IMG/VR virus record: IMGVR_UViG_3300044796_000657
Location: 248,001 to 312,000 of that record
Strand: one strand, 5' to 3'
DNA: 64,000 bases
The notes under the pieces were generated by a model. That model was not told the origin of the DNA. It was given only the letters and a program-made list of their open reading frames with translations, and did not search any database. Shown here one piece after another: positions 19,809 to 58,765 of the stretch (position 1 is the first letter of the stretch; each line of letters starts with the position of its first letter). A program made the position numbers and the translations under genes.

Positions 19809-20612
19809 TTAGAAGTATTTTAGTGATGTAATCACAGTATCGATAATTTCATCTTTGTCTTGCGTTGGTGTGAAGAACGCATCCAAATACGGAATATCAA
19901 TTTCCCAATCGCCACCATCTTGTCCAATTGATACGGTGGACACAATCACGTGAATTAATCCACGTTTTTTATCGAAGTTAACATCTATTGTCGCTTCGGG
20001 TGTTTGTGTAACATTTCTAGTTCTACTTGCCAATTTTCCTACGCCCATGCCTCTAAGATTGAAATAAATGACGAAATAGTCTTTTCGTACTTCTTTGATG
20101 TCTTGAAAAATGTATAAATCGGGTGCGTGTGCCCTTACTCTTGCGCTCATCCTCTTAGCCAGATTGATGACTTCGCATTTCTCGGTTGCTACTTCTAATT
20201 GATCAAAATAAATTTTTTCTACTTGCTTGAAAACGTCGTCCGCTACAAACTCTTCTTTCCCTGCGTAATCTTTCAATTTTGGTTTGAATACGTTTTTGAG
20301 AATCCAAGTCGACGTACCTTCTAGGTCGGTAATGCGTCTTTCAACGAAAATGGTGATATTTGGCGTTAATTTAACTCTTACGGCTCCGGCATCTTTGCCG
20401 CCCCATACGACTTGATCTAAAAATGCATGACTTGAACGTATGCGATTGCCGATTTTCTTGTGTGCGAGAGTCCCCATCAGCCATTCGACGCTAAAGGGCT
20501 TGACCGGCATTTCGTCTTCTGCCGTATCATCCTCTGCGGCTAATACTTTCTTAGCTTCAAGATCATCGAAGCCAAATATGTCGCTTTCAAAATAACTCTT
20601 AAATACACCCAT
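19809..20612 (-). CDS. Hypothetical protein with capsid-targeting-like N-terminus
   Basis: MGVFKSYFE; TAAATA 6 nt upstream. Confidence 0.55.
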   Translation of the reverse strand: MGVFKSYFESDIFGFDDLEAKKVLAAEDDTAEDEMPVKPFSVEWLMGTLAHKKIGNRIRSSHAFLDQVVWGGKDAGAVRVKLTPNITIFVERRITDLEGTSTWILKNVFKPKLKDYAGKEEFVADDVFKQVEKIYFDQLEVATEKCEVINLAKRMSARVRAHAPDLYIFQDIKEVRKDYFVIYFNLRGMGVGKLASRTRNVTQTPEATIDVNFDKKRGLIHVIVSTVSIGQDGGDWEIDIPYLDAFFTPTQDKDEIIDTVITSLKYF

Positions 20613-20618
20613 CCTATA

Positions 20619-20624
20619 TATTTA
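20619..20624 (-). promoter_or_regulatory. TAAATA late-promoter-like box
   Basis: TAAATA-tatagg-ATG(20612). Confidence 0.5.
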
Positions 20625-20667
20625 CTCCTAATGGTTCATTTCTATGTACACATCGTAAAGGCTAAAA

Positions 20668-20952
20668 ATGAAATTCCGTGATTTTGTAAGGTTAAAAGAA
20701 GGCGTTGATTTATCAGACATCCGTGATATGATTTTGAGAGCGATAGGCGGCAACCCCGAAAGTCACGAGGCGTTTAATGCTCCGCTCACTCAGTTTGTAG
20801 AACCGGGGGATTTGGTCAACCGACTTAATTCACTAAAGGGACTCGCTGACCTAATCAAAGATAATGCTTCGGCAATTGATGCGATACAGAACGCACAGAC
20901 CAACAATTTAACTGTTGGACAATTGGCCGTGATTTTGACACGACAAGGATAA
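20668..20952 (+). CDS. Small protein with capsid-targeting-like N-terminus
   Basis: MKFRDFVRLKE. Confidence 0.55.
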   Translation: MKFRDFVRLKEGVDLSDIRDMILRAIGGNPESHEAFNAPLTQFVEPGDLVNRLNSLKGLADLIKDNASAIDAIQNAQTNNLTVGQLAVILTRQG

Positions 20953-20955
20953 CAA

Positions 20956-21189
20956 ATGCTCAATTCCGAACTTTCATTGTACGAAGGTATGCACGTGAAA
21001 ATTCAAGCGACTAATTATGGAATCGGACCTGAAACCATTGTTAAGGGAAAGTTGCGGTTTTCGGGTTCTACAAAACGTTGGTTCGTTGAAAGAACGGGCG
21101 TCTACGCCAATTTTACGTCGATGGAAATCAGCAAAATTGATCTTTGGACTCCCCAATACGAAGTTGAGATATTAAAGGAGACTCACTAA
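20956..21189 (+). CDS. Array paralog 1 of 6 (small beta-rich, Sm/SH3-like?)
   Basis: MLNSEL..Y.G..VKI...GKLRF...YEVEIL. Confidence 0.65.
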   Translation: MLNSELSLYEGMHVKIQATNYGIGPETIVKGKLRFSGSTKRWFVERTGVYANFTSMEISKIDLWTPQYEVEILKETH

Positions 21190-21407
21190 TGACCAATGCA
21201 GAATTGAAAATACTTCGCAATAAACGGGTCGAAGTTAAGTTTAGCGACCGAAGTAGTGCTGCCGGTACTACTCGCAAGGGTCTTTTGACGTACAATTATG
21301 ATCGTGAGCGATGGATGGTCGGTTCAAAATCGTTCTATCTCGACGACATTGAAACCGTTGTCAAAATACAGCCGTACGTAGTGGAGATTCTTGATGAAGC
21401 CAATTAG
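21189..21407 (+). CDS. Array paralog 2 of 6
   Basis: NKRVEV...GLLTY...VVEILD. Confidence 0.65.
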   Translation: MTNAELKILRNKRVEVKFSDRSSAAGTTRKGLLTYNYDRERWMVGSKSFYLDDIETVVKIQPYVVEILDEAN

Positions 21408-21618
21408 CCTCAAACCATTTCTCAATAAGCGAGTTGAAATTACGAGAATTCCATTAACGGTGGATGATCCTCGCACTGTTAGAGGCCGATTAAGCTACAA
21501 GAAGTCCGATCCTTATGGGTATTTTCGCATAGACAACACAGCATATTGCTCGTTCCGAGTCACTTCTATCAAACTAGCACCGGCAATTAGCGTGGAGATT
21601 CTCGATGCTCAAGAGTGA
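21394..21618 (+). CDS. Array paralog 3 of 6
   Basis: ATG at 21394 after GGAG-7nt; NKRVEI...GRLSY...SVEILD. Confidence 0.65.
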   Translation: MKPISLKPFLNKRVEITRIPLTVDDPRTVRGRLSYKKSDPYGYFRIDNTAYCSFRVTSIKLAPAISVEILDAQE

Positions 21619-21832
21619 GTTCAAGCCATATGTTGGCAAAAAAGTTATTCTCCATAGAGGCGTGTTCAATGGTGTCCAATTGCCGCCTTCTACTGGTGTA
21701 ATAACTACCACAAAGATTCAACTTATCAATTATTATTACATCAATGGAATGGCCTTTAATGTTTCCAATGTAACAAGTGTTGAAGTTGTCAAACCAAAGC
21801 TAACTGTGGAGATCCTTGATGTATACCAGTGA
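21605..21832 (+). CDS. Array paralog 4 of 6
   Basis: GKKVIL...GVIT...TVEILD. Confidence 0.65.
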   Translation: MLKSEFKPYVGKKVILHRGVFNGVQLPPSTGVITTTKIQLINYYYINGMAFNVSNVTSVEVVKPKLTVEILDVYQ

Positions 21833-22031
21833 AATAATACCCTACTTGAATAAAAAGGTAGCTATCGTTTGCTATAAATTTGGCATACCTATGAATTACA
21901 CGGGCGTATTGACAATGAGCGACGACTCTTATGGCTATTGTCACATTGATAAGTCTCCCCACTGCATCAAATACATCACTCAAATTAAGTTAAAATCATC
22001 CATCAAAGTAGAGATTCTCGATGTTGATTAA
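21819..22031 (+). CDS. Array paralog 5 of 6
   Basis: ATG at 21819; NKKVAI...GVLTM...KVEILD. Confidence 0.65.
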   Translation: MYTSEIIPYLNKKVAIVCYKFGIPMNYTGVLTMSDDSYGYCHIDKSPHCIKYITQIKLKSSIKVEILDVD

Positions 22032-22269
22032 CGAAATTATTCCTTTTAGCGGCCAAAAAGTCATAGTGACATGTATTAAGTATAAAGTTTCAGGTATCAT
22101 GCAGCAACCTTACAAGCTTTATGGTACCGAATACGTTGTAGTACAAAAAGACAATTTGTTCCACTATAACTTGCGTTTAGGAAATATAGTTTCCATTGAA
22201 CCACAACCATCAAAATACAAAGTGGAGATTTTAGATGAATCTCAATACGCTGCCAATCAGCATAGTTAA
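22021..22269 (+). CDS. Array paralog 6 of 6
   Basis: GQKVIV...GIM...KVEILD; its 3' end overlaps the PheRS start. Confidence 0.65.
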   Translation: MLINEIIPFSGQKVIVTCIKYKVSGIMQQPYKLYGTEYVVVQKDNLFHYNLRLGNIVSIEPQPSKYKVEILDESQYAANQHS

Positions 22270-23260: not shown

Positions 23261-23439
23261 ACTGCAAACTCTGCGATGGACTTGGCATGGTCGCCCGCCC
23301 CTATGACGAAACATTGGGGTTTTGGGAGGACTGCCCATTATGCATCAAACCAGTTAAGGTTCAAAGGCCGCCTTATGGCTTGTTAATATTTTTCTTTGTC
23401 GTTATTGTTACGATTTTCTTGTACAGCATGGGGAAATGA
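23257..23439 (+). CDS. Small CxxC zinc-finger protein with C-terminal TM helix
   Basis: CKLCDGLG...CPLC followed by a hydrophobic tail. Confidence 0.5.
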   Translation: MNCKLCDGLGMVARPYDETLGFWEDCPLCIKPVKVQRPPYGLLIFFFVVIVTIFLYSMGK

Positions 23440-23672
23440 TCATGATCGATGCATTCGGCCAACCAATCGGCCTTATAACACTTTGCTGCCGAGGCACCAA
23501 AGGAAGCGGCGGCACGGTTTACAATGGAGGGGTGGTAATTAAAGTGTTTGAGCAGACACACACAAGCCCAGACAGAGTTACTGTTGAAGTCAAACAAACA
23601 AGTGCTCGTCATGGAATAACGCCTTCAAACCCAATCCTTTACGCAAGTAATGTTGTTGTTTTACCGCAATAA
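23436..23672 (+). CDS. Hypothetical protein
   Basis: 78 aa, coupled by ATGA overlap. Confidence 0.45.
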   Translation: MIMIDAFGQPIGLITLCCRGTKGSGGTVYNGGVVIKVFEQTHTSPDRVTVEVKQTSARHGITPSNPILYASNVVVLPQ

Positions 23673-23693
23673 TAAACATTAAGGTGTTTTACA

Positions 23694-29300: not shown

Positions 29301-29879
29301 ATGAGCAATTTATTCGCAAAATACGATCATTTGAATTTCAAAGAACGACTAGATCGTGGCAAGAAATTTGAAGAGATTATTGACTCGGTTCTCTTACCAA
29401 TGAACCGCAAAATCAAGCAGTCTACTCTCAACGAAGACATGCACGAGAAGATCGACCGCATCGAAGAACTTCCTGACGGTACAACAAGAAAACTCGCCTA
29501 CAAAGCCAGAACATCGGGTGACGACATCCTCTTGGATTTGTATGAACCATTCTATGGCATCGACAATACAGCAACTCGTCCCGGTCGTGACCTCATATCC
29601 CCTTATGATAGATATTTTTGCTTAGAGCGTGGTGGTGGCAACCTGCGAGAAATCGATGGCGCTGTCCAGAAAATGCGTATCAAGGAAGTCTTAACTGAAT
29701 GGGCTGATTGTAGCTACTTTTTGAGCCGTGGATGGTTCAACAGTGTCAGAGTCCCAGGTATCAGCTTAAAGTATCACGTCGATAAGAGCAACGATAGGCC
29801 GAAGATCATAATGTTCATCAAGCCAAGCGTCTACAAAGAAAACGAAGAAATCTGGTATTATAAGGTTAATAATGAGTGA
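29301..29879 (+). CDS. Putative PD-(D/E)xK nuclease
   Basis: RGKKFEEII...D.HEKIDRI...LAYKAR pattern; lies between two MTases. Confidence 0.45.
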   Translation: MSNLFAKYDHLNFKERLDRGKKFEEIIDSVLLPMNRKIKQSTLNEDMHEKIDRIEELPDGTTRKLAYKARTSGDDILLDLYEPFYGIDNTATRPGRDLISPYDRYFCLERGGGNLREIDGAVQKMRIKEVLTEWADCSYFLSRGWFNSVRVPGISLKYHVDKSNDRPKIIMFIKPSVYKENEEIWYYKVNNE

Positions 29880-31032
29880 ATTGCGACAGAAGACTTTGAA
29901 CATCATGGGACAATTGAAGATCGAAGATAGAAAAAGACTCGGCCAGTATTTCACACCAGAACATATCCGCCATGTTGCTTTCAATACACTCCCACAATAT
30001 GACTTCAAAAAGATATTAGAGCCTTCGTTTGGTACTGGCGAATTCCTAGAGGATTTAGCCTTACGATACCCGGACTCGGCCATAGATGGTTATGAAATCG
30101 ATCCCGCACTATTCAACGAGATGGCATGGGATAAGGGTACGTTAACTCTCGGTGATTTCTTGAAGAACGATATTCCCGACGACACCTACGATTTGGTCAT
30201 CGGGAATCCTCCGTACTTCCAAGTACAAGAATACGATCAAAAGTTTAATACCGTAGTCAACGGTCGGCCCAACATATTCTCATTCTTCTTTCAAGAAGGC
30301 ATCAGAGTATTGAGGGACGGCGGTTGGCTTGTTTACGTTATCCCTACCAGTATGTGCACAGGGAAATACTTTCTTAATTTAAGAAAGCACATCGAGGAGT
30401 ATTGTGGTGTCAAAGCCATCGTTAACTTTGATGACAGTGAGTTTGAAAATGCTCTACAGTCTGTAATTGTTCTAACACTTCAAAAAGGGTTTGAAAGTCA
30501 GAAGAATTTGGTGTATGGTGATGACTTCAAATTCAATTACAACGGTGACGACATCATAGAGAAATCCCAGAGTGGCAAAACCTTAAACCAATTAGGGTTT
30601 CATGTCAAAACGGGTAATCTCGTCTGGAACCAGCATAAAGAAGAATTGACCGATGTAGCCGAAGACAACATTAAGTTGCTTTGGTCACACAATGTCAGCA
30701 AGGAAAATATCCTTACCGATCAAACCAAAAAACCGCAGTACGTGCTAAACAGGATGCGTGACAAGATTACGCCTTACCAAGCACCGGCAATTGTTGCCAA
30801 GCGGACATTGGGAGCAGTCGGTAAGGGTACTCTCAACGCTTGTTTGATTGAAAGCGGCGAGTTTTATGCTGAAAATCATTTGAATGTTATAACTCACAAA
30901 GACCATACACAACTGCCAGTGCTATTGAACGAATTAACTAAGCCATCAACTTCCGAACTAGCTAGAAGGATCACGGGAAACACCCAATTATCGAAAACGG
31001 AATTGATGTACTTACTTCCATTGGCATTATGA
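29872..31032 (+). CDS. N6-adenine DNA methyltransferase (gamma class with C-terminal TRD)
   Basis: LGQYFTP, ILEPSFGTGEF, VIGNPPY, FHVKTGNLVWNQ, FYAENHL. Confidence 0.9.
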   Translation: MSELRQKTLNIMGQLKIEDRKRLGQYFTPEHIRHVAFNTLPQYDFKKILEPSFGTGEFLEDLALRYPDSAIDGYEIDPALFNEMAWDKGTLTLGDFLKNDIPDDTYDLVIGNPPYFQVQEYDQKFNTVVNGRPNIFSFFFQEGIRVLRDGGWLVYVIPTSMCTGKYFLNLRKHIEEYCGVKAIVNFDDSEFENALQSVIVLTLQKGFESQKNLVYGDDFKFNYNGDDIIEKSQSGKTLNQLGFHVKTGNLVWNQHKEELTDVAEDNIKLLWSHNVSKENILTDQTKKPQYVLNRMRDKITPYQAPAIVAKRTLGAVGKGTLNACLIESGEFYAENHLNVITHKDHTQLPVLLNELTKPSTSELARRITGNTQLSKTELMYLLPLAL

Positions 31033-46701: not shown

Positions 46702-48234
46702 ATGAAGCAATTTGATGAGATGTTGGCAAGTTTTGAAAACAGCAATTCCGAACAATTTAAGAAGCAAACGGGGGTTGTTTATACACCCCCTTTTGTCGTT
46801 AAATACATTCTTGATAAAACCCTCACTTCGCTTTCCGTAGATACCAAGATTATCGACCCCGCTTGTGGGGGCGGTATATTCATTCTGTACGCAATAGAAT
46901 ACCTACGACACGTCACAGGCAAAGCGATAGATGAAATCATCGCAAACAACGTGTACGGCATCGACAACGACCCTAATGCCGTCGCTCTTGCCCATGAGGT
47001 TTTGACTCAATATAGCCAAGTCGCTTGCGGCAAAAAGCCATCTAAGATCAACATATATCATGGCGATTCTACCGACATTGAATTCCTGTCATCGTTGGGC
47101 AAATTCGACTACGTTGTCGGCAATCCTCCTTATGTCCGTATCCAGAACATTCCCGAAGATAAGCGGCAGTATTTGAAATCTTGGAGTATGGTTAATGGTG
47201 ATAGTGATCTGTATATTGCCTTTATTGAACTAGCCTTTTTTCTCTTGAAGTCAGACGGAAGATTGGGCTTCATCACGCCGAATTCTTATCTGAAAAACAA
47301 GTCAACGATCAATCTTTTGAATTGGCTGATCGATAACAGAAAGATCGTTGAGCTTATAGACTTTGAAGGTTATCAGATATTCGGTAAGAAGGCCACAACT
47401 TATACTAGCATTCTTATTGCTTCCAATGAAGAACAAAAATCCATGACCATGCGAAAATTAACTGGTATGGATGAAAATCTGGATAAGGTTTTATCAACGG
47501 ATGTCAAGTCTTATGAAGTTGTCAAATCCAAGAGTATTCTAATTCCTAGCAATAAGATCAATCGCTTGAACAAGTTTGAGAATGTTGGAACAAAGCTCAA
47601 AAACCTAGTTAAGATCAAGGTAGGATTGGCAACACTCGCTGATTCAATCTTTTATACGGATACTGACTTGGAATTGGTCAAACCGTGCGTCAAAGTCAGT
47701 AAGATCAAAAACCAATCTGACATTGTCAAACATACCAAGTCCGTCATTTATCCCTACCAAATCGTCAATGGTAAGGCTGTTCCTTATAGCGAACAAGAGT
47801 TGTCGCAATTCCCAAAGACGTATGAGTATTTGTTGAGTCGCAAGGAGGAATTGATGAAAAGGGATCGTGGCAAGATTGCTTTGTGGTACACTTATGGTAG
47901 AACGCAAGGGTTGACGAGCTTGTTTGGGCGGAAGATGTTAATGCCACCGATGATACAGGATGCTAAGTTTGTTATCTCAGAAGATCCAGATTTGTTGTAT
48001 TTGTCTGGTTATGCGATATTTGGTGATAGGCTTGAGATGTTAAAGATTGTCTTGGAGTCAGATATTTTCAATGAATACATTGCTTTGACGGCGAAGGATT
48101 TTCGTGGTGGATGGAAGGCATGTACCAAGCACGGTATAGAAAACTTTTCTATTCCAGATATTGACGATAATGAGATGGATGAGTTGAAAAATGATACAAA
48201 TGCTTTTTTGAACAGAAAGTATGGTCTGACATAA
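46702..48234 (+). CDS. Eco57I/TaqI-like N6-adenine DNA methyltransferase
   Basis: GVVYTP, IIDPACGGGIF, VVGNPPYVRIQ, DLYIAFIE, VKIKVGLATLADSIF. Confidence 0.9.
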   Translation: MKQFDEMLASFENSNSEQFKKQTGVVYTPPFVVKYILDKTLTSLSVDTKIIDPACGGGIFILYAIEYLRHVTGKAIDEIIANNVYGIDNDPNAVALAHEVLTQYSQVACGKKPSKINIYHGDSTDIEFLSSLGKFDYVVGNPPYVRIQNIPEDKRQYLKSWSMVNGDSDLYIAFIELAFFLLKSDGRLGFITPNSYLKNKSTINLLNWLIDNRKIVELIDFEGYQIFGKKATTYTSILIASNEEQKSMTMRKLTGMDENLDKVLSTDVKSYEVVKSKSILIPSNKINRLNKFENVGTKLKNLVKIKVGLATLADSIFYTDTDLELVKPCVKVSKIKNQSDIVKHTKSVIYPYQIVNGKAVPYSEQELSQFPKTYEYLLSRKEELMKRDRGKIALWYTYGRTQGLTSLFGRKMLMPPMIQDAKFVISEDPDLLYLSGYAIFGDRLEMLKIVLESDIFNEYIALTAKDFRGGWKACTKHGIENFSIPDIDDNEMDELKNDTNAFLNRKYGLT

Positions 48235-48237
48235 ATA
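48231..48237 (+). promoter_or_regulatory. ATAAATA late-promoter-like box
   Basis: ATAAATA-agat-ATG(48242). Confidence 0.55.
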
Positions 48238-48241: not shown

Positions 48242-49051
48242 ATGGATTCTTTTAGTCGTTTTATTATTAGCGAAGGTGTCAATATCACGGCATCACCTGA
48301 GTTAGCAGATCAAATTCCTCAAGCGAAAAAAGCGTTGATGCTATATTTGCAGCGATATGGCGATAAGCAAGAACTCAAAGCGAGTATGGCACGCTTCAAG
48401 TATACTTTAACAAAAGTTCGTCAAGACGACTGGAACAATGAAGTAACATATCATTTCACAAATGATACGATTGACAAAGGCAAAGGTCGGGATGAGATTA
48501 TTAGCGACAAATCAGATGATCGGTATGAGTATTATCCAAATTGGGATGGTCGCACGGGGAAAAGGGTTTATAAGAGTCCCAAGGATGCTATTGATTCCAT
48601 TCCGAATGATGAGAATTTAGCTTATCGTGGTATGAGTTGGGAAGAGTGGCGAAGTATTCAGAAAACGGGCATTATCCAGAGTAAAGGTCAACATAATTTC
48701 AGCAATCAAGGATCGTTAACATTTTTCGGCCCCAAGTCTTCAACGGGTGAAAGTTATGCGGGCGGTTTTGCGCCGAATGCTTATTCACCTACGCCTGTTC
48801 GTCCGGGTGTTGTGATTGCGGTTCCCAAGAATCTTCTCAAAACACCAAAAGACAATCCTAATATTCCTCAAGGCGAGTTGGCTTTTGAGGGAACGATGGA
48901 TGCCAAGAATATTGTGAATGCTTGGATGTTGGTTGCCACGAAGACGAAACCGGGGAAATTTGATGTTGTTTTTAACTTAAAAACCAACCAAGTGCGTGAA
49001 GGTTCGAGAATGTCTATCAGTGTGTCGTATTCAATTCGTCAAATCAAGTAA
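48242..49051 (+). CDS. Putative ADP-ribosyltransferase-fold protein with capsid-targeting-like N-terminus
   Basis: MDSFSRFIISE; LAYRGMS.EE...I..TG; LTFFGPKSSTGESYA; QGELAF. Confidence 0.45.
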   Translation: MDSFSRFIISEGVNITASPELADQIPQAKKALMLYLQRYGDKQELKASMARFKYTLTKVRQDDWNNEVTYHFTNDTIDKGKGRDEIISDKSDDRYEYYPNWDGRTGKRVYKSPKDAIDSIPNDENLAYRGMSWEEWRSIQKTGIIQSKGQHNFSNQGSLTFFGPKSSTGESYAGGFAPNAYSPTPVRPGVVIAVPKNLLKTPKDNPNIPQGELAFEGTMDAKNIVNAWMLVATKTKPGKFDVVFNLKTNQVREGSRMSISVSYSIRQIK

Positions 49052-49282: not shown

Positions 49283-49605
49283 ATTTTACATATGTTGCAA
49301 CTGGCGTAGTTAAGACTCACGGTTGTTTTGACATGGAGTTTGATTTTTTCTTTGTCGCCCTCTATCCAGTGGGATCGGTAGCGTACGATAAAATATCTGC
49401 CAAACGTGGCAGGATGGAAGCCGTTTCAATTAAGAGGGTGGAATTTGTAGGTTGCGACCACCACCCACTTTATACCGATAATCTGAATACCGTTTATACA
49501 GAAAGTGATTTGGTTTCTCATGACGAGGCCAAAAATTTAGCGATTGCTTATTACAATCGCTTGATCAATCAAGCCAATAATGCTATTGAGTTGCGGAATT
49601 GTTAA
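49279..49605 (+). CDS. Hypothetical protein
   Basis: 108-aa ORF, coupled. Confidence 0.5.
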   Translation: MNFTYVATGVVKTHGCFDMEFDFFFVALYPVGSVAYDKISAKRGRMEAVSIKRVEFVGCDHHPLYTDNLNTVYTESDLVSHDEAKNLAIAYYNRLINQANNAIELRNC

Positions 49606-49813
49606 CAGCGTTTGGGCTTTGAGTGACGTTGGGGTTTTGAAATTCAACGCTGATAATGCAGTTGGAGGTGGCCGGAAAGGCGTGCTTTGTAAGGCCGTCT
49701 TGTAGATATTTGATGATTTCCAGCACGCTGCCGGAAACTTCAACCCCCCACGATGCTTGGTTAGCTTGGACTGTTTCTTGTTGGTTTTTCCATTCATCAA
49801 ATTTAATAAGCAT
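49583..49813 (-). CDS. Small protein with capsid-targeting-like N-terminus
   Basis: Internal ATG at 49813 gives MLIKFDEWKNQQE. Confidence 0.45.
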   Translation of the reverse strand: MLIKFDEWKNQQETVQANQASWGVEVSGSVLEIIKYLQDGLTKHAFPATSNCIISVEFQNPNVTQSPNAVNNSATQ

Positions 49814-49820: not shown

Positions 49821-50087
49821 TCAATTAAAAGGGTTAGCTTCTTGTGGGGTTTCAATTCGCATTTTCTTACCATCGAGATCGTATTTGATACTGACTTGCT
49901 GTACTGGCAAAGTAGTTTCTTCACCGTCCAACATGCTCAATTCGTGTTCGATCTTCAACCAGTGGCAGCGGTCGTTGGGTTTAACTTTTAATTCCAAGTA
50001 TTCCCCTGCATGAACCACGGTTACGTTACAAACGCCTTCTTCGGCATTATACATCGCACAATTCTTACAGATTTTCTTTTTTAACAT
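49821..50087 (-). CDS. Small Cys-rich protein
   Basis: ATG at 50087; CKNC..YN...GVC...C. Confidence 0.5.
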   Translation of the reverse strand: MLKKKICKNCAMYNAEEGVCNVTVVHAGEYLELKVKPNDRCHWLKIEHELSMLDGEETTLPVQQVSIKYDLDGKKMRIETPQEANPFN

Positions 50088-50235
50088 TTTTCTTCTTCTT
50101 TTTATCATCGGACAAAATTACGGGCTTTGGATACATTCTGCCTACTGATCCGCCGATAGGTCTGGCGAAGTTGGCAATATCCCCTGTACTTGTCATAGTT
50201 TCTTCGATGTTTTTTAACCATTCTCTAAAAGTCAT
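50065..50235 (-). CDS. 56-aa protein with capsid-targeting-like N-terminus
   Basis: Not in the track: MTFREWLKNIEETMTSTGDIANFARPIGG...KKKKKNVKKENL; TAATG overlap with the upstream gene. Confidence 0.6.
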   Translation of the reverse strand: MTFREWLKNIEETMTSTGDIANFARPIGGSVGRMYPKPVILSDDKKKKKNVKKENL

Positions 50236-50708
50236 TACATTCCTCCCATTGGTGGACCGCCGCCTCCGGTCGGACCAGCCAAAGTGTTACCCTGTGATTT
50301 CCATTGTACTCCACCGGAAGCCCCGGCGAAATCTGCTCCTTGATAATTAGGCGGTTCCATCAATTTCAGGAACGTATCACGTGTCATTGTGATTGATTTT
50401 TTGCCCAAATTATCAGCCGTGTCCAAATCTAATTCATCATCAATATCGTCGCCATTACCATCTTTATCCAAAGCCGCATAGGGAATTGGTTTGATGGTAA
50501 CCGTATGACTATCAAAGTCAGTGACGTAGAAAGCCGCCGGTTGGCGAATTAAGTGTCCGCCCAACTTAACATTGCTCAATGTGATCGGCATACCGAACCA
50601 CAACTTTTTTGGAACTTTGAGTTGTTTTTTGATCGTAGAAACGTAGCTGTCAGGAGCTTCCGCTTTTTTCTCTACAAACAATTTAAACCCAACTAGCAAA
50701 TTTGACAT
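50235..50708 (-). CDS. Hypothetical protein with capsid-targeting-like N-terminus
   Basis: MSNLLVGFKLFVE; Gly/Pro/Met tail; TAAATA upstream. Confidence 0.55.
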   Translation of the reverse strand: MSNLLVGFKLFVEKKAEAPDSYVSTIKKQLKVPKKLWFGMPITLSNVKLGGHLIRQPAAFYVTDFDSHTVTIKPIPYAALDKDGNGDDIDDELDLDTADNLGKKSITMTRDTFLKLMEPPNYQGADFAGASGGVQWKSQGNTLAGPTGGGGPPMGGM

Positions 50709-50712
50709 ACTC

Positions 50713-50718
50713 TATTTA
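50713..50718 (-). promoter_or_regulatory. TAAATA late-promoter-like box
   Basis: TAAATA-gagt-ATG(50708). Confidence 0.55.
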
Positions 50719-50728
50719 CACCTTGGGT

Positions 50729-50736
50729 TATAAATA
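50729..50736 (+). promoter_or_regulatory. TATAAATA, exact T4 late promoter consensus
   Basis: TATAAATA-gact-ATG(50741). Confidence 0.6.
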
Positions 50737-50740
50737 GACT

Positions 50741-52105
50741 ATGAAATTTAAGTCTTGGATTGCGGAAACTCTGAATTTTGATTCTCCTCAAAGGGCAGGC
50801 ATGCAAACGCACCCTTTGGTTACAGGTGCTACAGTTGGTTTAGAGATAGAATTAATGACCCTCTCAATTCCTTACAAGGAATTTACACCTTTAATGTTAG
50901 CAAGGGCGTTATGGGATGCTGATGATTATAAATTTGATGTTCAACAACGAATGAGATTGAATGCTGAATCTGAATATGATGATGATGAAGATTTGGATAT
51001 GCGAGATTTGATTAACTGGGTTACGATGAATAAAAAAGAGGCTTACGATTATTTCAAACAACATCTTGAAAGTGGCCAGTTGAACTTAGGTAAAACCAGT
51101 ACGGATTGGAAAGACGAAGTTGTTAAGTATTGGTCTAAACACTTTATGAAAGCTATTGAGGCGGGAGGGTTTAAGGCTTTTTATGGTGCGCAATCTACGA
51201 AAGACTCTTGGGCTGTTGGCGATGATGGTCACGATACTATGTACCATATCCCCATCTTGGAAATGAGGAGTTCCGTTATTCCTTATGCGGCGTTGCCAAA
51301 TCTTCAAAAAGCGTTAACTGCGATTGCCGAAGTAATCAAAAACAATCCAGAAGATTTAATGGTTCAAAACAATACTGGTATCCACATTCACGTTGGTAAT
51401 GCACGGACTGGCGATTTGAATGCCAAGGGCTGGCGTGGCGATCATATGGACATGTTTAGCCGGTTAGCCGCTGCCACTCATACGGACGAAGACAGCATTT
51501 GGGATACGATGTCAAAACACGATAGGGATTTTTCTCAATTCGCTATGCTTAACAGACAGCAGGATTTTGAACAGACCCGGAGCGGGTACGGAAGTGCTCA
51601 CAATGATATTATCAACCAACTGAACAACTTAAGGTACAAGAAAGAACCGACGATAACGGTCAGCAACAAAGACTTGTGGAACCGGGTCAAGCCCGACCGT
51701 AAGAGTGGAACAAGTGTCGTTTCAGAGCATCCGACAGTAGAATACCGACACTTTACATCGCAGGTGTTGATGGAGGCTGATGGCGTAGAAAAGATTATGG
51801 CGTGGATCAAGTATTTCGTTGATAATGCCGCTTCGCAAGTCAATAAAAATAGGATCAAGTTTGAGAATGACGAAGAGCGTATTATTCTGACGAAGTTGCC
51901 AAAGGATATGGTAAGAATTGACTTCCAAGACAAAGGATCAAAAGCTAGAATTCCGCAACCCGGTATGCCAAGGGATGCGTTGATGGCGACTCCCAAGAGT
52001 GGGGTACGGGATACCGATCAAGGGTTCAAGCATTGGTGGGATAGATTAACGTGGCAGCAAAAGGCTCAGTACAGAAAAGACAAGGGCAGACCGCCTCTTG
52101 TTTAA
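50741..52105 (+). CDS. Amidoligase-like protein with capsid-targeting-like N-terminus
   Basis: MKFKSWIAE; TVGLEIE, W.VGDDG, LEMRS, NTGIHIHVG, TVEYRHF. Confidence 0.7.
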   Translation: MKFKSWIAETLNFDSPQRAGMQTHPLVTGATVGLEIELMTLSIPYKEFTPLMLARALWDADDYKFDVQQRMRLNAESEYDDDEDLDMRDLINWVTMNKKEAYDYFKQHLESGQLNLGKTSTDWKDEVVKYWSKHFMKAIEAGGFKAFYGAQSTKDSWAVGDDGHDTMYHIPILEMRSSVIPYAALPNLQKALTAIAEVIKNNPEDLMVQNNTGIHIHVGNARTGDLNAKGWRGDHMDMFSRLAAATHTDEDSIWDTMSKHDRDFSQFAMLNRQQDFEQTRSGYGSAHNDIINQLNNLRYKKEPTITVSNKDLWNRVKPDRKSGTSVVSEHPTVEYRHFTSQVLMEADGVEKIMAWIKYFVDNAASQVNKNRIKFENDEERIILTKLPKDMVRIDFQDKGSKARIPQPGMPRDALMATPKSGVRDTDQGFKHWWDRLTWQQKAQYRKDKGRPPLV

Positions 52106-52341: not shown

Positions 52342-53199
52342 TTAACCAATAAAATCAGAAATTCTACTCAAGACTTCTTTCCAATTACCCAATTCTTTTT
52401 GTCGCCATATTTTCATGGTGGGATACCAAATACTGTCACCGGAACCCCATCGCCAATCATGCTGATAAGCCAAAGCCAAATGTACTGTTTTTCCCATCGC
52501 TGCTGCCAAATGAGCAACAGCCGTATCAACACTGACTACAGTATGACATTCCGCTATCAGTTTGGCTGTATCATTCAAGTCTGCCAACATTAGAGAATAA
52601 TCTTCGAATCTTAAGTCGGATTGTGTGACCATTAAACTTGTTAATTTTCTTCCATCCTTAACTAATAAACTAAAATCTTCTGCTGAGGATGACCTGATGC
52701 TGTCATCGGCGTGACCTGCAAATCCTGTCCATGCCACACCAATTCTCCCTTGGTCGTTATTGGGAATGTTAATGTACTGTTCGTTGATGATTGTTTTGAA
52801 GTGAGCGGGTAAACTGGAAACTGGAATTACAAAGTTGCAATTCGGCAAAGCATCACCACGAACTATTACGTCATAACCTTGGTTTTTCATCAAGTGAAAC
52901 AGTTCAGGTGCAACTTCCAATACGACATTTGACATTAAGTCTGTATATCGTACCCACATGATAAAATCGCCGAAACCTTGATCTTGGTAAACGAGAACTT
53001 TTCCTTGTTCACCTTTCCATGTTGGCATCGGGTAATGACTTCGTCTGTTAATTGTTGAGCGATGACCTTTGAGTCGCCATTCCAATTCAGGCCACGCTTC
53101 TTGCCATCTTCCCAAATAACCCAATACACATCCATATCGCCAATGAAGTTCGGCATCATTAGGGTTTTTGAAAATTTGATCTTCGAGATCTTTGAGCAT
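52342..53199 (-). CDS. TPR-associated GT9-like glycosyltransferase
   Basis: GRWQEAWPELEWR, DQGFGDFIMWVRY, GVAWTG, VSVDTAVAHLAAAMGK, DWRW, WYPTMKIWRQ. Confidence 0.8.
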   Translation of the reverse strand: MLKDLEDQIFKNPNDAELHWRYGCVLGYLGRWQEAWPELEWRLKGHRSTINRRSHYPMPTWKGEQGKVLVYQDQGFGDFIMWVRYTDLMSNVVLEVAPELFHLMKNQGYDVIVRGDALPNCNFVIPVSSLPAHFKTIINEQYINIPNNDQGRIGVAWTGFAGHADDSIRSSSAEDFSLLVKDGRKLTSLMVTQSDLRFEDYSLMLADLNDTAKLIAECHTVVSVDTAVAHLAAAMGKTVHLALAYQHDWRWGSGDSIWYPTMKIWRQKELGNWKEVLSRISDFIG

Positions 53200-53741
53200 T
53201 AACTATTTTTTTTACGAGTGGGCTTGTAATGAATAATAGCGTCCGAATCTGGGTATTTATTTTGCCATCCCATGCTGGCGTACCAAGCCTTCAATTTTTG
53301 TGTACTTAGTCCTTTGGGCGGCTTTTGGCCTTTAACTTTAGCGGGCGTTATTTCTTGGGGTTCGGCAACTAAAGTTATTCCCAATTTATTTGCGACACTT
53401 TGCAACCATTTCAGAGATGATGTTGCCAATCCTTTGCCACGTGCTTCTGGCTTAACAATAATTGCGGCAACTGTTAATTGTTTTGATTGCTTTGGGTCAT
53501 ATCCGGCAACCATTACCCTATTCTGATAAAGGTATAGGTCGTATTCTGATAATGCAATCTTCACATTTCCGTCTGGACTAACGATTGTAGGGTAATTTGT
53601 GCCACCCAATGAGACGACTTCGGGATTAGTACCCGGAATTAATCGATTAGATGGTGCTTCCCACCGCCAACCTTGTTTTTCAATTTCAGAACGCAAACTG
53701 ACAAATGGGTGTGCGGCTTCAATGAATAATCTAAAACTCAT
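53199..53741 (-). CDS. GNAT acetyltransferase with capsid-targeting-like N-terminus
   Basis: MSFRLFIE; IIVKPEARGKGLAT (motif A); LKAWYASMGW. Confidence 0.75.
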   Translation of the reverse strand: MSFRLFIEAAHPFVSLRSEIEKQGWRWEAPSNRLIPGTNPEVVSLGGTNYPTIVSPDGNVKIALSEYDLYLYQNRVMVAGYDPKQSKQLTVAAIIVKPEARGKGLATSSLKWLQSVANKLGITLVAEPQEITPAKVKGQKPPKGLSTQKLKAWYASMGWQNKYPDSDAIIHYKPTRKKNS

Positions 53742-53745: not shown

Positions 53746-53751
53746 TATATA
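53746..53751 (-). promoter_or_regulatory. TATATA box variant
   Basis: TATATA-gaag-ATG(53741). Confidence 0.4.
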
Positions 53752-54674: not shown

Positions 54675-54682
54675 TCACTGAT

Positions 54683-54689
54683 CTAAATA
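54683..54689 (+). promoter_or_regulatory. CTAAATA late-promoter-like box
   Basis: TAAATA-ctctcact-ATG(54698). Confidence 0.45.
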
Positions 54690-54697
54690 CTCTCACT

Positions 54698-55594
54698 ATG
54701 GACTTTAAACTTTGGTTAGAATATAGCGGGGCTAAATCGGTTCTCGTTTATCACGGTACAGATCCCAAAAACATTCCTTCTATTATGTCGCAGGGTTTGA
54801 TTCCAAATCCCAAAGCAAGAAAATGGGCTGATGATCCACATGCCAATTTCAATTCAGCAAGCCGCAAATCAATTGGTGGTATTTATTTAACCACCAATCT
54901 ACAAACGGCCTTTTCTGCTGCCCCACCGAGAACTGCTTGTATTGTTGTGGCCGAAGTACAGCCGAGAAGTATGTTGGCGGATGAAGATGATTTGATGTCA
55001 ATGGGACAAGCAAGCGATCACGAATATACTTTATTGGAATTGTTTTTTGCGATCAAAACGAATACCAATCACGAATTCGTAGAGCAAATGAAAGCCAAAT
55101 ACGAACAAAGTGTATTCGCAAGAATTACATGGAAGATTCCAAATATATCACCACAATTGAAAATTAGAGTTAAGCAAATTCTCGATGACGCATTTCCTTA
55201 CGTTGTAGACCGTCAAACAGCACACGTTCATACAGATGAATTTCGCAATAGAAAGTATTACCACAAAGAAGCCAAGGATGTTCAACAACCCAATAAGCAA
55301 GCTGCGGAAGCCGCTTATCAGAAACACCTAGATTTGGCAACCAGAGCCTTGAAGTCAATCGGCAATCCTTATAGTCGTAAAGAAAACAGTTTGTTCATGT
55401 TCGTCGGACGGCTAATGGAACCAATTAGATTCAGTGGTGCGAATAAAATTGTATGCGTTATTGAAACTTGGCTTAATGAAAAAAATAAGACAAGAGTGAA
55501 ATTGCTTTACGGAAGCGTACCAGATAAGCTCATTAAGGATTGGAACTCAGCCATTGGCCCGTGGGAAAAGGCCATTAGCGAAGAGGGCAATTAA
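54698..55594 (+). CDS. Putative ADP-ribosyltransferase (H-Y clade, PARP/Tpt1-like fold) with capsid-targeting-like N-terminus
   Basis: MDFKLWLE; LVYHGT.PKN..SI..QGL.P; GGIYLTTN...A. Confidence 0.6.
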   Translation: MDFKLWLEYSGAKSVLVYHGTDPKNIPSIMSQGLIPNPKARKWADDPHANFNSASRKSIGGIYLTTNLQTAFSAAPPRTACIVVAEVQPRSMLADEDDLMSMGQASDHEYTLLELFFAIKTNTNHEFVEQMKAKYEQSVFARITWKIPNISPQLKIRVKQILDDAFPYVVDRQTAHVHTDEFRNRKYYHKEAKDVQQPNKQAAEAAYQKHLDLATRALKSIGNPYSRKENSLFMFVGRLMEPIRFSGANKIVCVIETWLNEKNKTRVKLLYGSVPDKLIKDWNSAIGPWEKAISEEGN

Positions 55595-55596
55595 CG

Positions 55597-55629
55597 AATA
55601 AAACCCACTTATTATAAGTGGGTTTTATT
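55597..55629. terminator. Bidirectional terminator
   Basis: AATAAAACCCACTTAT-T-ATAAGTGGGTTTTATT between convergent genes. Confidence 0.8.
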
Positions 55630-55635
55630 GCGATT

Positions 55636-57135
55636 TCAATAAGACGAACTACTAGATCCGGTTTCACATGTTGAAACACGCATTCTCGGAAGATCGTACT
55701 TTAACCAATCACGATAAATCTTGGTAAAATCTCTTATCATTTTTTCAATTGATGAACATAGGTCATTCATCCCGTCAATGGTAGCCTTCCAATCACACTT
55801 ACAAGTAAACGCAAGAATAAAATCATTCAAATTTTTCAATGCATTTTGAATTGGTGTAAAATAATCTTTAACAGTAGCAAAAGAATTCAGTATTGCTGTT
55901 CCAATTTTACAACAAGCTTCACTCTTACTGCAATAAAGATTCTTAAGAGCAATCATTTCGTCATTCGTTTTATTGACTTCTTGGATGATAGCATTAGCAC
56001 TGTAAGTAATAGTATTCAAACGATTGAATACAGCTAAATTGGCAGCATCACACTGAGCTTGTCTTTCAGGAGGAGCAGCAACAGCATTTACTCTATCGCA
56101 TAAGCAACCTACAATTTGCTGTCTCAAATAAGTGCAAATGCTCTTACAGTTATCGTCTCCTCCTGCACACTGAGGAACTACGTTTTCGGGTGTATTGGTG
56201 TCAGTGAGGAGTTGTCCAAACTTGTTACAGCCTATTTCTACAACTTTGTTAAGTGCAAATTTCATCAATGCATCAATTTGCCTTCTTTCGGCTTCATCGG
56301 GGCTTATTCTTCTTGCACCTGAATCAACAGCGTATTCGTAATATAATCTTTGTGCTTCGGTAAATGTGCTTCTCGTAACACCAAACGGTGAAACTTGAAT
56401 CGTATATTTTAAAACATCCGAAGTTAAGGTGCGGGAAATACCAAACGCATCGGTATAATTAGTGGCGTCAGCACCCATTGTTTCGAATAACTTAATTACG
56501 CAAGCATCCTCTGCGGGAGTAGGAGTTGGGAAAAACAAAGCTAATGGTCCACCGCCGCCTTTTGGTCCACCTTTTGGACCACCTTTTGGGCCAAGTCCTC
56601 TTGGCCCGGTGCCCGGCGATACTGTTGCAGATGGTGCTGCAGGAACAGGAACGACTTGCGGTCTAATAATAGCCGTCGGCTTTGGAAGTTTAACTCCGGG
56701 TTGCTCGACGGAAGAGAAAGGCTCTCCTAGAGGGCCGGATATAATTGGTTGGCCATTTGACGGCACAATTGGGCTTCCTTGTGGCGGCACCGTAGTTAAC
56801 GAATATGGTCCTCTTGCACCACCAGTACTCATGCCTTTATCATAACCCATACCTTGATCGCCAACAATAAGTTGTCCGTTGCCGAGGCGTCCATTAGCAT
56901 ATGGTTGCGCTGGCATAGGTATACCAGGACCAGTAGATGGTGCTGGAGCAGGTTGCGGTCTGACCGTACCCGGAATTAATTGGCCAGTATTCCTATCAAA
57001 TTGTGCACCATCGAGTCTTTGTCCTGCTCCATATGGCATTGCACTATTTCCTTGTCCTGCCTGTGGCATTGGTGGGAATGGACCGAGAGGTCCGGGGGTG
57101 CCGGGGATTGGAGGTGTACCGGGTGGTGGTGCCAT
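55636..57135 (-). CDS. Pro/Gly-rich N-terminus / Cys-rich helical C-terminus protein, probable paralog of 3033..4655
   Basis: Starts MAPPPGTPP; ends CETGSSSSY; about 14 Cys in the C-terminal half. Confidence 0.6.
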   Translation of the reverse strand: MAPPPGTPPIPGTPGPLGPFPPMPQAGQGNSAMPYGAGQRLDGAQFDRNTGQLIPGTVRPQPAPAPSTGPGIPMPAQPYANGRLGNGQLIVGDQGMGYDKGMSTGGARGPYSLTTVPPQGSPIVPSNGQPIISGPLGEPFSSVEQPGVKLPKPTAIIRPQVVPVPAAPSATVSPGTGPRGLGPKGGPKGGPKGGGGPLALFFPTPTPAEDACVIKLFETMGADATNYTDAFGISRTLTSDVLKYTIQVSPFGVTRSTFTEAQRLYYEYAVDSGARRISPDEAERRQIDALMKFALNKVVEIGCNKFGQLLTDTNTPENVVPQCAGGDDNCKSICTYLRQQIVGCLCDRVNAVAAPPERQAQCDAANLAVFNRLNTITYSANAIIQEVNKTNDEMIALKNLYCSKSEACCKIGTAILNSFATVKDYFTPIQNALKNLNDFILAFTCKCDWKATIDGMNDLCSSIEKMIRDFTKIYRDWLKYDLPRMRVSTCETGSSSSSY

Positions 57136-57186
57136 AATTTCTTTCTTTCTTTTGGGCGACTGAGTGCCATTATTATATTGATGTGC

Positions 57187-58158
57187 TTATTTTTTTTTAG
57201 GCAAAACAATTGGCTTAACATTTAATTCTTGTCTCGCCTGTTCGAGTTGTTCTTCAAACTCTTTGATTTGTTCTGGAAATTCTTTGACTATAGCATTTTT
57301 TAAGTGATTCAATAATCTGAAGTGATTTCTTCTTTCATTGTCGTCGCCATGAACCATTAATGGTACTAAATTTATAGCATCTTCCCATTCCCTATCAATC
57401 ATACTAACGCCGCTTTTATCGACCAAAGTATTAAATCTACTCATATCATCTTTGAACGACCAGTCGTCTCCCTTTTGCATTTTCCCTAAATCGTAATGAT
57501 ATATTTTACCACGATAAACACCTACTTGAATTTGGTCGTTGATTGAGTATCCTGCTTTGTGAAAAGCGTTTATAGTATCCTTAACTTCGTTCAATTGTTC
57601 TTTGGTTAACTTACCCGGAATATCCACTTTCGGCCTTACCGCAAATGCTTTGTCGCCTATAATTCTAACATATGTCGGCAGAATACCGGGAACGCCTTGC
57701 TTTCTCAATTTCTCTGTTAGTCTTACATTTTCCAGCATACTTCTTGCAGCGCCAGCCGGTGTTCTATGAAAGACACTTGCATTTGTGGGTTGAAACGGTA
57801 CAGTTGTAGAAACTTTAACGATCATATCTCCAACCTCAAACGCCATACCGTCATCGCCTTTTCCTAAATACTTGGCTTGACCGTTAATGACTTTTGAAAT
57901 ATAGGGATCATCGGTTTTTTTGGATACTTCAACTTTTTTGGTTAGATCGTTGGCGAAATGTTGTACGGCAGCACGTGTCATTTTGAACGCACCGATAAGG
58001 TCATCATGTTGGAGATGTTGAGTTAGCCAAACCGAATCGCCTCTGATGTGTACGATCTTGACTTTGATGGGTGAACGGTTATCTTCCTCGGAAGCAGGAA
58101 TGTCAATGATCTGTCCAATTTTCAAGTCTACGGCTTCTAACCACAGTTTGAAATTCAC
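57187..58158 (-). CDS. Protein-kinase-like protein with capsid-targeting-like N-terminus
   Basis: MNFKLWLE; YLGKGDDGMAF (Gly loop), IVKV (Lys), YHYDLG (DFG-like); catalytic loop divergent (SINDQIQ). Confidence 0.55.
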   Translation of the reverse strand: MNFKLWLEAVDLKIGQIIDIPASEEDNRSPIKVKIVHIRGDSVWLTQHLQHDDLIGAFKMTRAAVQHFANDLTKKVEVSKKTDDPYISKVINGQAKYLGKGDDGMAFEVGDMIVKVSTTVPFQPTNASVFHRTPAGAARSMLENVRLTEKLRKQGVPGILPTYVRIIGDKAFAVRPKVDIPGKLTKEQLNEVKDTINAFHKAGYSINDQIQVGVYRGKIYHYDLGKMQKGDDWSFKDDMSRFNTLVDKSGVSMIDREWEDAINLVPLMVHGDDNERRNHFRLLNHLKNAIVKEFPEQIKEFEEQLEQARQELNVKPIVLPKKK

Positions 58159-58337
58159 TTCTTGGCATTCCTTACAACTGTAGGCTCGCCGCTATCATCA
58201 AAAGTAAATTTGACTTTCTTCTTTGGCTTGTCACCGCCAACTACAATCGGCTCACCTTCTAAATTTGAGGCTAAACGAATTTTATCGTGATGCTTTTTGG
58301 CTTCAACGAACTCTCTGAATGTTTTGAATGTTTTCAT
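58155..58337 (-). CDS. 60-aa protein with capsid-targeting-like N-terminus
   Basis: MKTFKTFREFVEA. Confidence 0.6.
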   Translation of the reverse strand: MKTFKTFREFVEAKKHHDKIRLASNLEGEPIVVGGDKPKKKVKFTFDDSGEPTVVRNAKK

Positions 58338-58342
58338 AACGT

Positions 58343-58348
58343 TATATA
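58343..58348 (-). promoter_or_regulatory. TATATA box variant
   Basis: TATATA-acgtt-ATG(58337). Confidence 0.4.
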
Positions 58349-58370
58349 GGATTTCTTTTTCGTTCCATTC

Positions 58371-58376
58371 TAAATA
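58371..58376 (+). promoter_or_regulatory. TAAATA late-promoter-like box
   Basis: TAAATA-acttc-ATG(58382). Confidence 0.55.
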
Positions 58377-58381
58377 ACTTC

Positions 58382-58765
58382 ATGTTAACTTGGCAAGATT
58401 TCCTGAAAATTCGTGAACATCAACTACACGAACCCAAAAACCACAAAGATGCTGTCAAGGAAGCCAAGAAGGTTAAGTTGGAATTTTTCGAAAAACGAAA
58501 ACAAGGAGCGGCTAAGATTGCTGCCGAAGCACGATCAAAAGGTGGCCCGTCAATGTTAACAGCTTGGCATTTCGCTGCCAAAGCCCAACCTTACAATGAT
58601 GTATTGTCTGCCATTCGTACTGATAAAGATGAAAACTTCTTTATGCAAAAGTGTTTGTTGTTAGCCACCAAGTTGAAATTCGCCAAATTGGATGAAGAGC
58701 AATTTCAAAAACTGATGGGTCAAATTGAGGTTTGGGGCGAAGCGTTTGCCAAACTATGGCATTAA
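58382..58765 (+). CDS. Hypothetical protein with capsid-targeting-like N-terminus
   Basis: MLTWQDFLKIRE. Confidence 0.55.
   Translation: MLTWQDFLKIREHQLHEPKNHKDAVKEAKKVKLEFFEKRKQGAAKIAAEARSKGGPSMLTAWHFAAKAQPYNDVLSAIRTDKDENFFMQKCLLLATKLKFAKLDEEQFQKLMGQIEVWGEAFAKLWH

Follow-up and report, generated by a model that had tools for sequence, protein, structure and literature searches.

A 64,000-nucleotide stretch of the IMG/VR virus record IMGVR_UViG_3300044796_000657 (positions 248,001 to 312,000; hereafter the window) encodes twelve predicted proteins that begin with a similar short peptide, and this shared N-terminal tag is the subject of the present analysis. The window is part of a huge phage whose relatives build T4-type heads. 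A preliminary description of the window had listed the twelve look-alike N-termini; all of the peptides were found at the assigned starts, and the presence of a shared tag in the window was confirmed. The tag follows the consensus M-K/x-T/N-F-K/R-x-W/F/Y-L/I/V…E and is carried by genes on both strands, which are named below by their start coordinates (Table 1). The starts at 49813 and 54698 lie inside longer open reading frames, and the start at 50235 is the first ATG of an open reading frame that was missed by our automatic gene calls; all three were also used by independent gene calls of the source contig (Joint Genome Institute, JGI, or Logan). The start codon at 58158 is GTG, so that the peptide reads V/M-NFKLWLE.

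Table 1. Tagged genes of the window, the control regions between divergent tagged genes and, in the last row, the tagged head-module family of related phages. Scores are those of the position matrix described in the text.
Position	Strand	Feature	N-terminus	Tag score	Upstream sequence or remark
19809-20612	-	267 residues	MGVFKSYFE	2.0 (weak)	TAAATATATA box 2-6 nucleotides upstream, about 20615-20624
20668-20952	+	94 residues	MKFRDFVRLKE	12.0 (strong; no internal position as high)	Shine-Dalgarno-like AAAGG, no box
46702-48234	+	510-residue N6 DNA methyltransferase (PHROG and Pfam methyltransferase matches)	MKQFDEMLASFE	4.3 (degenerate)	possible thirteenth member
48242-49051	+	269 residues	MDSFSRFIISE	5.1 (borderline)	TAAATA box 48232-48237
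49583-49813	-	76 residues	MLIKFDEWKNQQE	4.8 (borderline)	
50065-50235	-	56-residue basic protein	MTFREWLKNIEE	17.6 (strongest)	GGAGG Shine-Dalgarno, no box; second gene of the operon starting at 50708
50235-50708	-	157 residues	MSNLLVGFKLFVE (tag set back by 7 residues)	8.0	TAAATA box 50713-50718, 4 nucleotides before ATG
50709-50740		32-bp divergent control region, two back-to-back TAAATA boxes (read from sequence)			TATAAATAGACT-ATG on the + strand, GTAAATAGAGT-ATG on the - strand; no Shine-Dalgarno on either side
50741-52105	+	454-residue amidoligase-like protein	MKFKSWIAE	10.2	
53199-53741	-	180-residue GNAT-like protein	MSFRLFIE	9.2	TATATA box 53746-53751
54698-55594	+	298-residue PARP/Tpt1-like protein	MDFKLWLE	8.6	TAAATA box 54684-54689
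57187-58158	-	323 residues (GTG start)	(M)NFKLWLE	13.2	Shine-Dalgarno-like sequence, no box; second gene after 58337
58155-58337	-	60-residue basic protein	MKTFKTFREFVEA	12.5	TATATA box 58343-58348
58338-58381		44-bp divergent control region, two boxes			CTATATAACGTT-ATG on the - strand, TCTAAATAACTTC-ATG on the + strand
58382-58765	+	127 residues	MLTWQDFLKIRE	10.9	TAAATA box 58371-58376
LR756511 528598-528945		member of the ~115-residue head-module family	MKTFxxY/F…E		further members in IMG/VR head loci L028-L101

The frequency of the tag at N-termini was compared with its frequency inside proteins. A regular expression derived from the twelve tags, [FWY]xx[FWY][ILVF]x0-4E, was tested at residues 2-8 and matched nine of the 89 automatically called window genes, against 0.35 expected from its internal frequency (11 matches in ~20,000 window positions); the sole Met-anchored internal match in the window was the alternative start at 54698. 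Because the expression had been written post hoc, the test was repeated on sequence outside the window. The complete genome of the best protein-level relative, the 595-kb uncultured phage LR756511.1, gave 34 N-terminal matches versus 8 expected, and 35 IMG/VR head loci (698 kb), fetched by the capsid protein of LR756511, gave 53 versus 3. A position matrix was trained on 92 foreign tags from LR756511 and the IMG/VR loci, with the window excluded from training; the consensus of these tags was M-(K/L)-(T/N/S)-F-(K/R/Q)-(E/Q/D)-(W/Y/F)-(L/V/I)…E. The matrix placed nine window N-termini above all 18,081 internal window positions. The proposed set of twelve therefore stands for nine strong members, the N-termini at 48242 and 49813 being borderline (9 and 11 internal positions as high) and that at 20612 weak. 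The N-terminus of the methyltransferase gene 46702, with 16 internal window positions as high, makes this protein a possible thirteenth member, which is not claimed here.

In T4, the capsid-targeting sequence (CTS), an N-terminal propeptide of 10-20 residues, attaches cargo to the scaffolding core and is cut off by gp21; it is enough to load foreign proteins. The head proteases of T4, phiKZ and SPN3US all cut after Glu (PMC5694885; PMC3012670; 10.1101/2021.01.19.427310). By sequence, the tag closely matches the leaders of the T4 internal proteins IPII/IPIII and IPI. Read directly from NC_000866, ipII and ipIII start with MKTYQEFIAEA and ipI with MKTFKEF, and the N-terminus at 58337 is the nearest of the twelve to these leaders. 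As a control, the regular expression was run on T4, where it recovered IPII, IPIII, gp61.1 and three less convincing N-termini versus 1.66 expected. The geometry of the tag, with F, W/F/Y and L/I/V at positions i, i+3 and i+4 and Glu after them, is that of a short amphipathic helix, and in both AlphaFold2 models (54698 and 48242) the tag was predicted as a short N-terminal helix of lower confidence directly before the domain. Synonymous codons vary from tag to tag (TTT/TTC, AAA/AAG, AGA/CGT, TTA/CTG, GAA/GAG), and the first aromatic residue lies anywhere from residue 3 to 8. This variation in codons and register excludes a fixed DNA or RNA element spanning the ATG and indicates that selection acts on the peptide. 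Outside the tag there was no significant pairwise similarity among the twelve proteins, which rules out hidden paralogy.

The tag is conserved within several of the protein families. Seven of the eight members of the amidoligase family, at 31-49% identity, keep it, with E9 invariant; it is also kept in the closest homologues of the 54698 protein (P0130, P0132, P0133) and in the orthologue pair formed by 20612 and LR_397976 of LR756511 (23% identity, E = 6e-16), in which the LR756511 protein starts with MKSFASWFNE. An unrelated 59.6-kb ENA contig with an amidoligase homologue carries seven tagged genes in 15.6 kb. The domain of the 48242 protein has 472 representatives, including huge multidomain proteins and some of bacterial appearance, and 17 of 100 small members of this family carry the tag. 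Since the tag occurs in only a subset of the family, it is a modular add-on and not part of the fold. Members of the 48242 family (P0144, P0145, P0147, P0151, P0158, P0203) and of the 54698 family (P0135, P0140, P0141) on other contigs were seen to have in common another recurrent N-terminus (MNWY…, MNWLxKIA…, MKIIKIASxLxIE). Some lineages may thus equip these cargo domains with a leader of their own; no further copies of the MNWY… N-terminus were found among the neighbouring genes in one 8-kb contig.

A late-promoter-like box had been described directly upstream of eight of the twelve genes, and this count was reproduced. TA[AT]ATA lies 2-8 nucleotides upstream of 8/12 tagged starts versus 5/78 untagged starts (Fisher p = 6.6e-6); in the window as a whole the motif is rarer than chance (59 copies versus ~77 in shuffles), and 13 of the copies stand 2-8 nucleotides before starts. 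In the tagged genes the box is mostly 4-6 nucleotides before the ATG, usually without a Shine-Dalgarno sequence. The same association was evident in LR756511 (odds ratio 23.6, p = 1e-14), where the spacing from box to ATG has a sharp maximum at 4-5 nucleotides. Some of the 'untagged' box genes begin with near-tags that the strict regular expression missed (MKTFKEFAALKE, MKTFAEWMEE, MLSFREWCEQ), which brings the LR756511 total of tagged genes nearer to 40-45. Shine-Dalgarno sequences precede 15% of the genes with a close-set box versus 53% of other genes (p = 3e-10). The same box occurs 24-38 nucleotides upstream of the capsid, terminase and 616-residue head genes, together with a normal Shine-Dalgarno sequence. 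It also stands immediately before the genes for a baseplate wedge protein (E = 2e-31) and a virion structural protein (E = 3e-69). No conserved -35-like element was found. The distance of 4-6 nucleotides to the ATG implies leaderless or near-leaderless mRNAs. From the sequence, the box would be a T4-late-type promoter from which transcription of the tagged genes starts at the ATG or beside it. Genes with a close-set box and no Shine-Dalgarno sequence were also observed in the window at starts 5316, 15213, 18084, 49070 and 63270; this class includes a 1,487-residue protein (58807-63270) and, in LR756511, the baseplate wedge protein, the virion structural protein and a 1,640-residue protein.

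The head genes of the clade are of the T4 type. LR756511 encodes homologues of the T4 terminase gp17 (E = 1e-28), portal gp20 (E = 3e-34), prohead protease gp21 (E = 4e-23) and capsid protein gp23 (E = 1e-35). Its protease (gene at 525953-526621) belongs to PF03420 and has 1,288 relatives at E <= 1e-20; a 310-residue gene at 525018-525950 is its scaffold candidate. The IMG/VR loci fetched by its capsid protein likewise have a PF03420 protease and core and shell genes of the gp22/gp23 type. The capsid protein of the clade is 62-92% conserved across 188 compared IMG/VR loci. Before the mature N-terminus, clade capsid proteins show L-L-E where T4 gp23, in a short alignment, has L-T-E, which we take to be the T4 cleavage site. 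The head module itself contains a tagged family of ~115 residues (24 members), which is well conserved only in the tag and in a C-terminal D/E-x-V-x-P-N-A-A stretch, with a variable middle. Its gene is on the opposite strand from the operon encoding the 616-residue protein, protease, candidate scaffold and capsid protein, from which it diverges, ~4 kb upstream of the capsid gene. By its sequence, this family is a candidate for an equivalent of a T4 internal or core protein. Two further tagged genes, encoding 165 and 1,076 residues, follow the capsid gene in LR756511.

The twelve proteins gave almost nothing above threshold in Pfam and PHROGs, and sequence searches of the PDB were uninformative. 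The preliminary description had named two proteins resembling ADP-ribosyltransferases (ARTs), an amidoligase and a GNAT among the cargo, and these assignments fared unequally. The 54698 protein was modelled with a predicted local distance difference test (pLDDT) score of 84, and its top fold matches, the ten best among them, were to PARP catalytic domains or to Tpt1/KptA, with probabilities of 0.7-1.0 and E values about 1e-2. H19, Y63 and E96 are invariant in 13 homologues, the Pfam scores for PARP and PTS_2-RNA being below their cut-offs; the model thus supports a PARP/Tpt1-like ART fold with an H-Y-E triad. The second ART is only probable. The 48242 protein (pLDDT 91.5) conserves R129, S147 and E212 within its family, consistent with a fold of the R-S-E type (Alt/cholera-toxin-like); one bacterial ART toxin subunit was matched at probability 0.97, the other fold matches were weak, those in BFVD were mostly uncharacterised phage proteins, and no Pfam match was obtained. 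The 50741 protein is a likely amidoligase, its own PF12224 score (19.7 bits) lying under the 22-bit cut-off and its homologues P0006 and P0008 carrying PF12224. The GNAT-like assignment of 53741 stayed below threshold (Acetyltransf_1 at 20.0 bits versus a cut-off of 20.7; PHROG acetyltransferase at E = 4.7e-4), and 58158, the putative kinase-like protein of the set, had no family or PDB sequence match. The 50235, 58337 and 58382 proteins are small and basic (isoelectric points 9.4-9.9), like the T4 internal proteins. Enzyme cargo also has a precedent in T4 Alt, a 682-residue protein annotated as present in the T4 capsid.

We consider it probable, at roughly 60%, that the tag is the counterpart of the T4 CTS and that the tagged proteins are loaded in the head and injected with the DNA. 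The leader would dock unrelated proteins onto the prohead scaffolding core, the capsid shell would close round the docked proteins, a gp21-family prohead protease would probably cut the leader after Glu, and the mature proteins would be retained inside the head and pass into the cell along with the DNA. The predicted cargo would comprise two ART-fold enzymes, amidoligase-like and GNAT-like enzymes and several small basic proteins, and the tagged genes would form an expression class whose late mRNAs are made together with those of the structural genes. This reading is favoured because it accounts for the T4 match, the N-terminal exclusivity, modularity and conservation of the tag, its terminal Glu, the regulation of the tagged genes alongside structural genes, the clade's head machinery and the tagged gene in the head module. 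The earlier idea of a T4-like packaging barcode is partly borne out: the tag is like the T4 leaders, conserved, modular, specific to N-termini, linked to the box and widespread in a clade of huge phages with T4-type heads. That the proteins are docked, cut, packaged and injected, that their genes are expressed late and that transcription starts without a leader are steps that we infer.

Several observations weigh against a capsid-targeting role. Although all twelve tags contain Glu, only five have L/I at P3, as in the strict T4 context L/I-x-E; the remainder are aromatic-aliphatic-Glu, and the position of the Glu is variable. The T4 internal proteins are basic, whereas a number of the cargoes here are enzymes of acidic or neutral character. 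The T4 protein gp61.1, a 54-residue hypothetical protein (NC_000866 18966-19130, minus strand), begins with MKTFKEFIKED and is not annotated as a head protein, nor, to our knowledge, has it been described as one; a CTS-like N-terminus is therefore no proof of packaging in itself. The head module of the phage in the window was not found: the source contig was outside the best 80 loci of the IMG/VR capsid scans, in which the capsid protein of the relative and a divergent one served as queries, and it was not among the best 120 of the 1,288 protease relatives. One step to the left of the window, the contig held only metabolic genes. As the module was not retrieved, the protease type of the source genome is deduced from the relatives. 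The cultured kin are distant, the nearest cultured capsid relatives being of the gp23 type at ~33% identity. A search with T4 gp55 (phmmer, E < 0.1) detected no homologue in LR756511 or the window, where a divergent one is possible, and no homologues of T4 gp45, gp44 or gp62 were found in either; the term 'late' consequently rests on the box shared with structural genes. Finally, packaging in virions is deduced from the genes of an uncultivated clade.

In the alternative that survives best, the tag is a docking or sorting helix with another destination and nothing is delivered to the next host. The destination might be the tail or baseplate, a membrane or a phage-made compartment, or the helix might serve a common chaperone, activator or protease that times enzymes in the infected cell. 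An amphipathic helix predicted at low confidence directly before a catalytic domain would suit such a role, as would the scarcity of the strict T4 cleavage context, the many cargoes that are enzymes useful late in infection and the similar N-terminus of gp61.1. We nevertheless regard this alternative as unlikely, given the specific likeness to the T4 CTS, the T4-type head and protease genes of the clade, the conserved tagged protein within the head module, and the short, charged character of the tag, which has no signal-peptide or transmembrane features.

A still less probable explanation, to which we give little credence, is that the tag is a by-product of expression, arising from selection for A/U-rich, unstructured first codons (AAA, ACU, UUU, AAA, GAA) on mRNAs that lack a leader or a Shine-Dalgarno sequence, so that look-alike K/T/F/E-rich N-termini would appear without serving the protein. 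The strong co-occurrence of the tag with the close-set box, the lack of Shine-Dalgarno sequences in the box genes and the A/U-rich consensus codons agree with it. It fails because half or more of the genes that have the box close to the start are untagged, including the baseplate and virion structural genes, because 20668, 50235 and 58158 are tagged and have a Shine-Dalgarno-like sequence instead of a box, and because Trp (UGG) and Leu occur at the fixed helical spacing i, i+3, i+4, with a register to the AUG that shifts by up to 6 codons; many other A/U-rich N-termini also lack the motif. Chance, hidden paralogy or cherry-picking of start codons, which might be suspected from the post hoc expression, the three weak members and the two internal starts, is effectively refuted by the enrichment in the window and its replication in LR756511 and the IMG/VR loci, the matrix trained without the window, the same starts in independent gene calls and the absence of similarity outside the tag.

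As a CTS-like leader, the tag resembles that of T4 in its length (10-15 residues), its near-identical consensus MKT-F/Y-K/Q-E-F/W-I/L…E, its terminal Glu and its occurrence on otherwise unrelated proteins. The clade also shares with T4 a gp21-family protease, a gp23-type capsid protein, a portal and a terminase, and the ART-fold cargo recalls T4 Alt. The two systems differ in scale, with twelve of ~90 window genes and at least 34 (perhaps 40-45) genes of the 595-kb relative tagged, versus 3 or 4 in T4. The predicted cargo here consists mostly of enzymes, whereas that of T4 consists of small basic DNA-associated proteins, and the Glu is less strictly placed, in a more variable context, than in L/I-x-E. 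Upstream of the ATG, the tagged genes have a box at 4-6 nucleotides without a Shine-Dalgarno sequence, whereas the T4 ip genes have AAAGGA and TAGGAAA; the replication genes here are of the DnaB and PolA types, unlike those of T4.

The giant phages phiKZ, 201phi2-1 and SPN3US load many proteins into the head and have a protease related to that of T4, which cuts after Glu; targeting to the prohead is attributed to N-terminal propeptides (PMC5694885). Most of these propeptides exceed 100 residues. Their sites are of the form S/A/G-x-E or A-x-E and they share no short consensus, whereas the leader described here is of T4 length and has a clear consensus. In the literature searched, no capsid targeting in huge or jumbo phages was found beyond the long-propeptide work on SPN3US and phiKZ. 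Phage P1 packages DarA, Hdf, DarB and other Dar proteins in its head as anti-restriction proteins. The concept is similar, in that enzymes are pre-loaded, delivered with the DNA and blunt host defence, and a tagged 46702 methyltransferase would presumably parallel DarB; the Dar proteins differ in being incorporated by an ordered protein hierarchy, with no common short leader, and have no sequence relationship to the proteins described here. The T4 late promoter reads TATAAATA, has no -35 element and depends on gp55, gp33 and gp45. The box resembles it in its core TA(A/T)ATA, often (C/T)TAAATA(G/A), in the lack of a conserved -35 element and in its position upstream of capsid, terminase and baseplate genes; it differs in its distance of 4-6 nucleotides from the ATG, in the acceptance of TATATA as a variant and in the failure to detect a gp55 homologue.

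The 50741 protein is encoded on the JGI metagenome contig Ga0480561_0000004 (614,480 bp), and the same phage was present in a second sample on Logan contigs of ~70 kb. The IMG/VR version is a 430,229-bp viral contig with nearly identical coordinates; the 184 kb by which the JGI contig is longer may represent a concatemer or repeat, or else sequence that was not classed as viral. No nucleotide match to GenBank phages was obtained with 14 kb of the window (megablast), and the 50741 amidoligase had no match among phages (tblastn). DnaB of the window is 35% identical to that of LR756511, and 21 of the 89 window proteins are common to both, most of them from one LR756511 region. The window holds replication and metabolic genes (DnaB, a PolA-type polymerase, helicases, methyltransferases and a tyrosyl-tRNA synthetase) and no recognisable head gene. 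The tyrosyl-tRNA synthetase, an EF-hand protein and an HNH homing endonuclease adjoining DnaB are cell-like accessory genes (5603-6760, 2328-2714 and 12524-13528, all on the minus strand). Just outside the window, upstream (locus L213), are genes for a Ro60/TROVE-vWA protein, RlaP, a formyltransferase and a 2OG-Fe(II) oxygenase. Two large proteins (3033-4655 and 55636-57135, both on the minus strand) have proline-rich, collagen-like N-termini, reading MANPPGTPPQP… and MAPPPGTPPIPGTPGP…, and a Pfam Collagen protein is also present on a related ENA contig. Five or six small genes at 20956-22269 (plus strand; 71-82 residues) have look-alike N-termini (MLNSELSLYEG…, MLKSEFKPYVG…, MLINEIIPFSG…) and possibly form a tandem family, for which BLAST at 1e-4 gave no mutual link. 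Paralogue pairs were seen in the adjacent genes 8991-9644 and 9641-10300 (both on the minus strand; 35% identity, E = 9e-30) and in the DNA methyltransferase-like genes 29872-31032 and 46702-48234 (both on the plus strand; 22% identity, E = 1e-6).

The mechanism itself is already known from T4. What would be new is its scale, with twelve genes in 64 kb and dozens in each genome, a cargo rich in enzymes, the occurrence throughout a very large uncultivated clade and the coupling to genes that lack a Shine-Dalgarno sequence and have a box adjoining the ATG. A broader proposal, for which the odds seem to us nearly even but not quite in its favour, is that throughout a large, global clade of uncultivated huge phages with T4-type heads a CTS-like leader loads dozens of enzymes per genome (ARTs, amidoligases, acetyltransferases and possibly DNA methyltransferases), expressed from leaderless late mRNAs, as an arsenal for host takeover and anti-defence. 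In that case the leader would predict from sequence the set of injected proteins across thousands of metagenomic phages. A box so close to the ATG suggests a leaderless late regulon, an unusual feature for phages with T4-type heads. If capsid targeting is correct, the few internal proteins of T4 would have a counterpart in a large and diverse enzyme arsenal. The leader would also single out candidate first-strike effectors and anti-defence proteins for direct testing, and supply new short tags with which foreign proteins could be loaded into large capsids. The question of why phages carry 400-600 kb of mostly unknown genes would be addressed in part, as several per cent of these genes could be assigned a role: to be delivered with the DNA and to act before phage gene expression.

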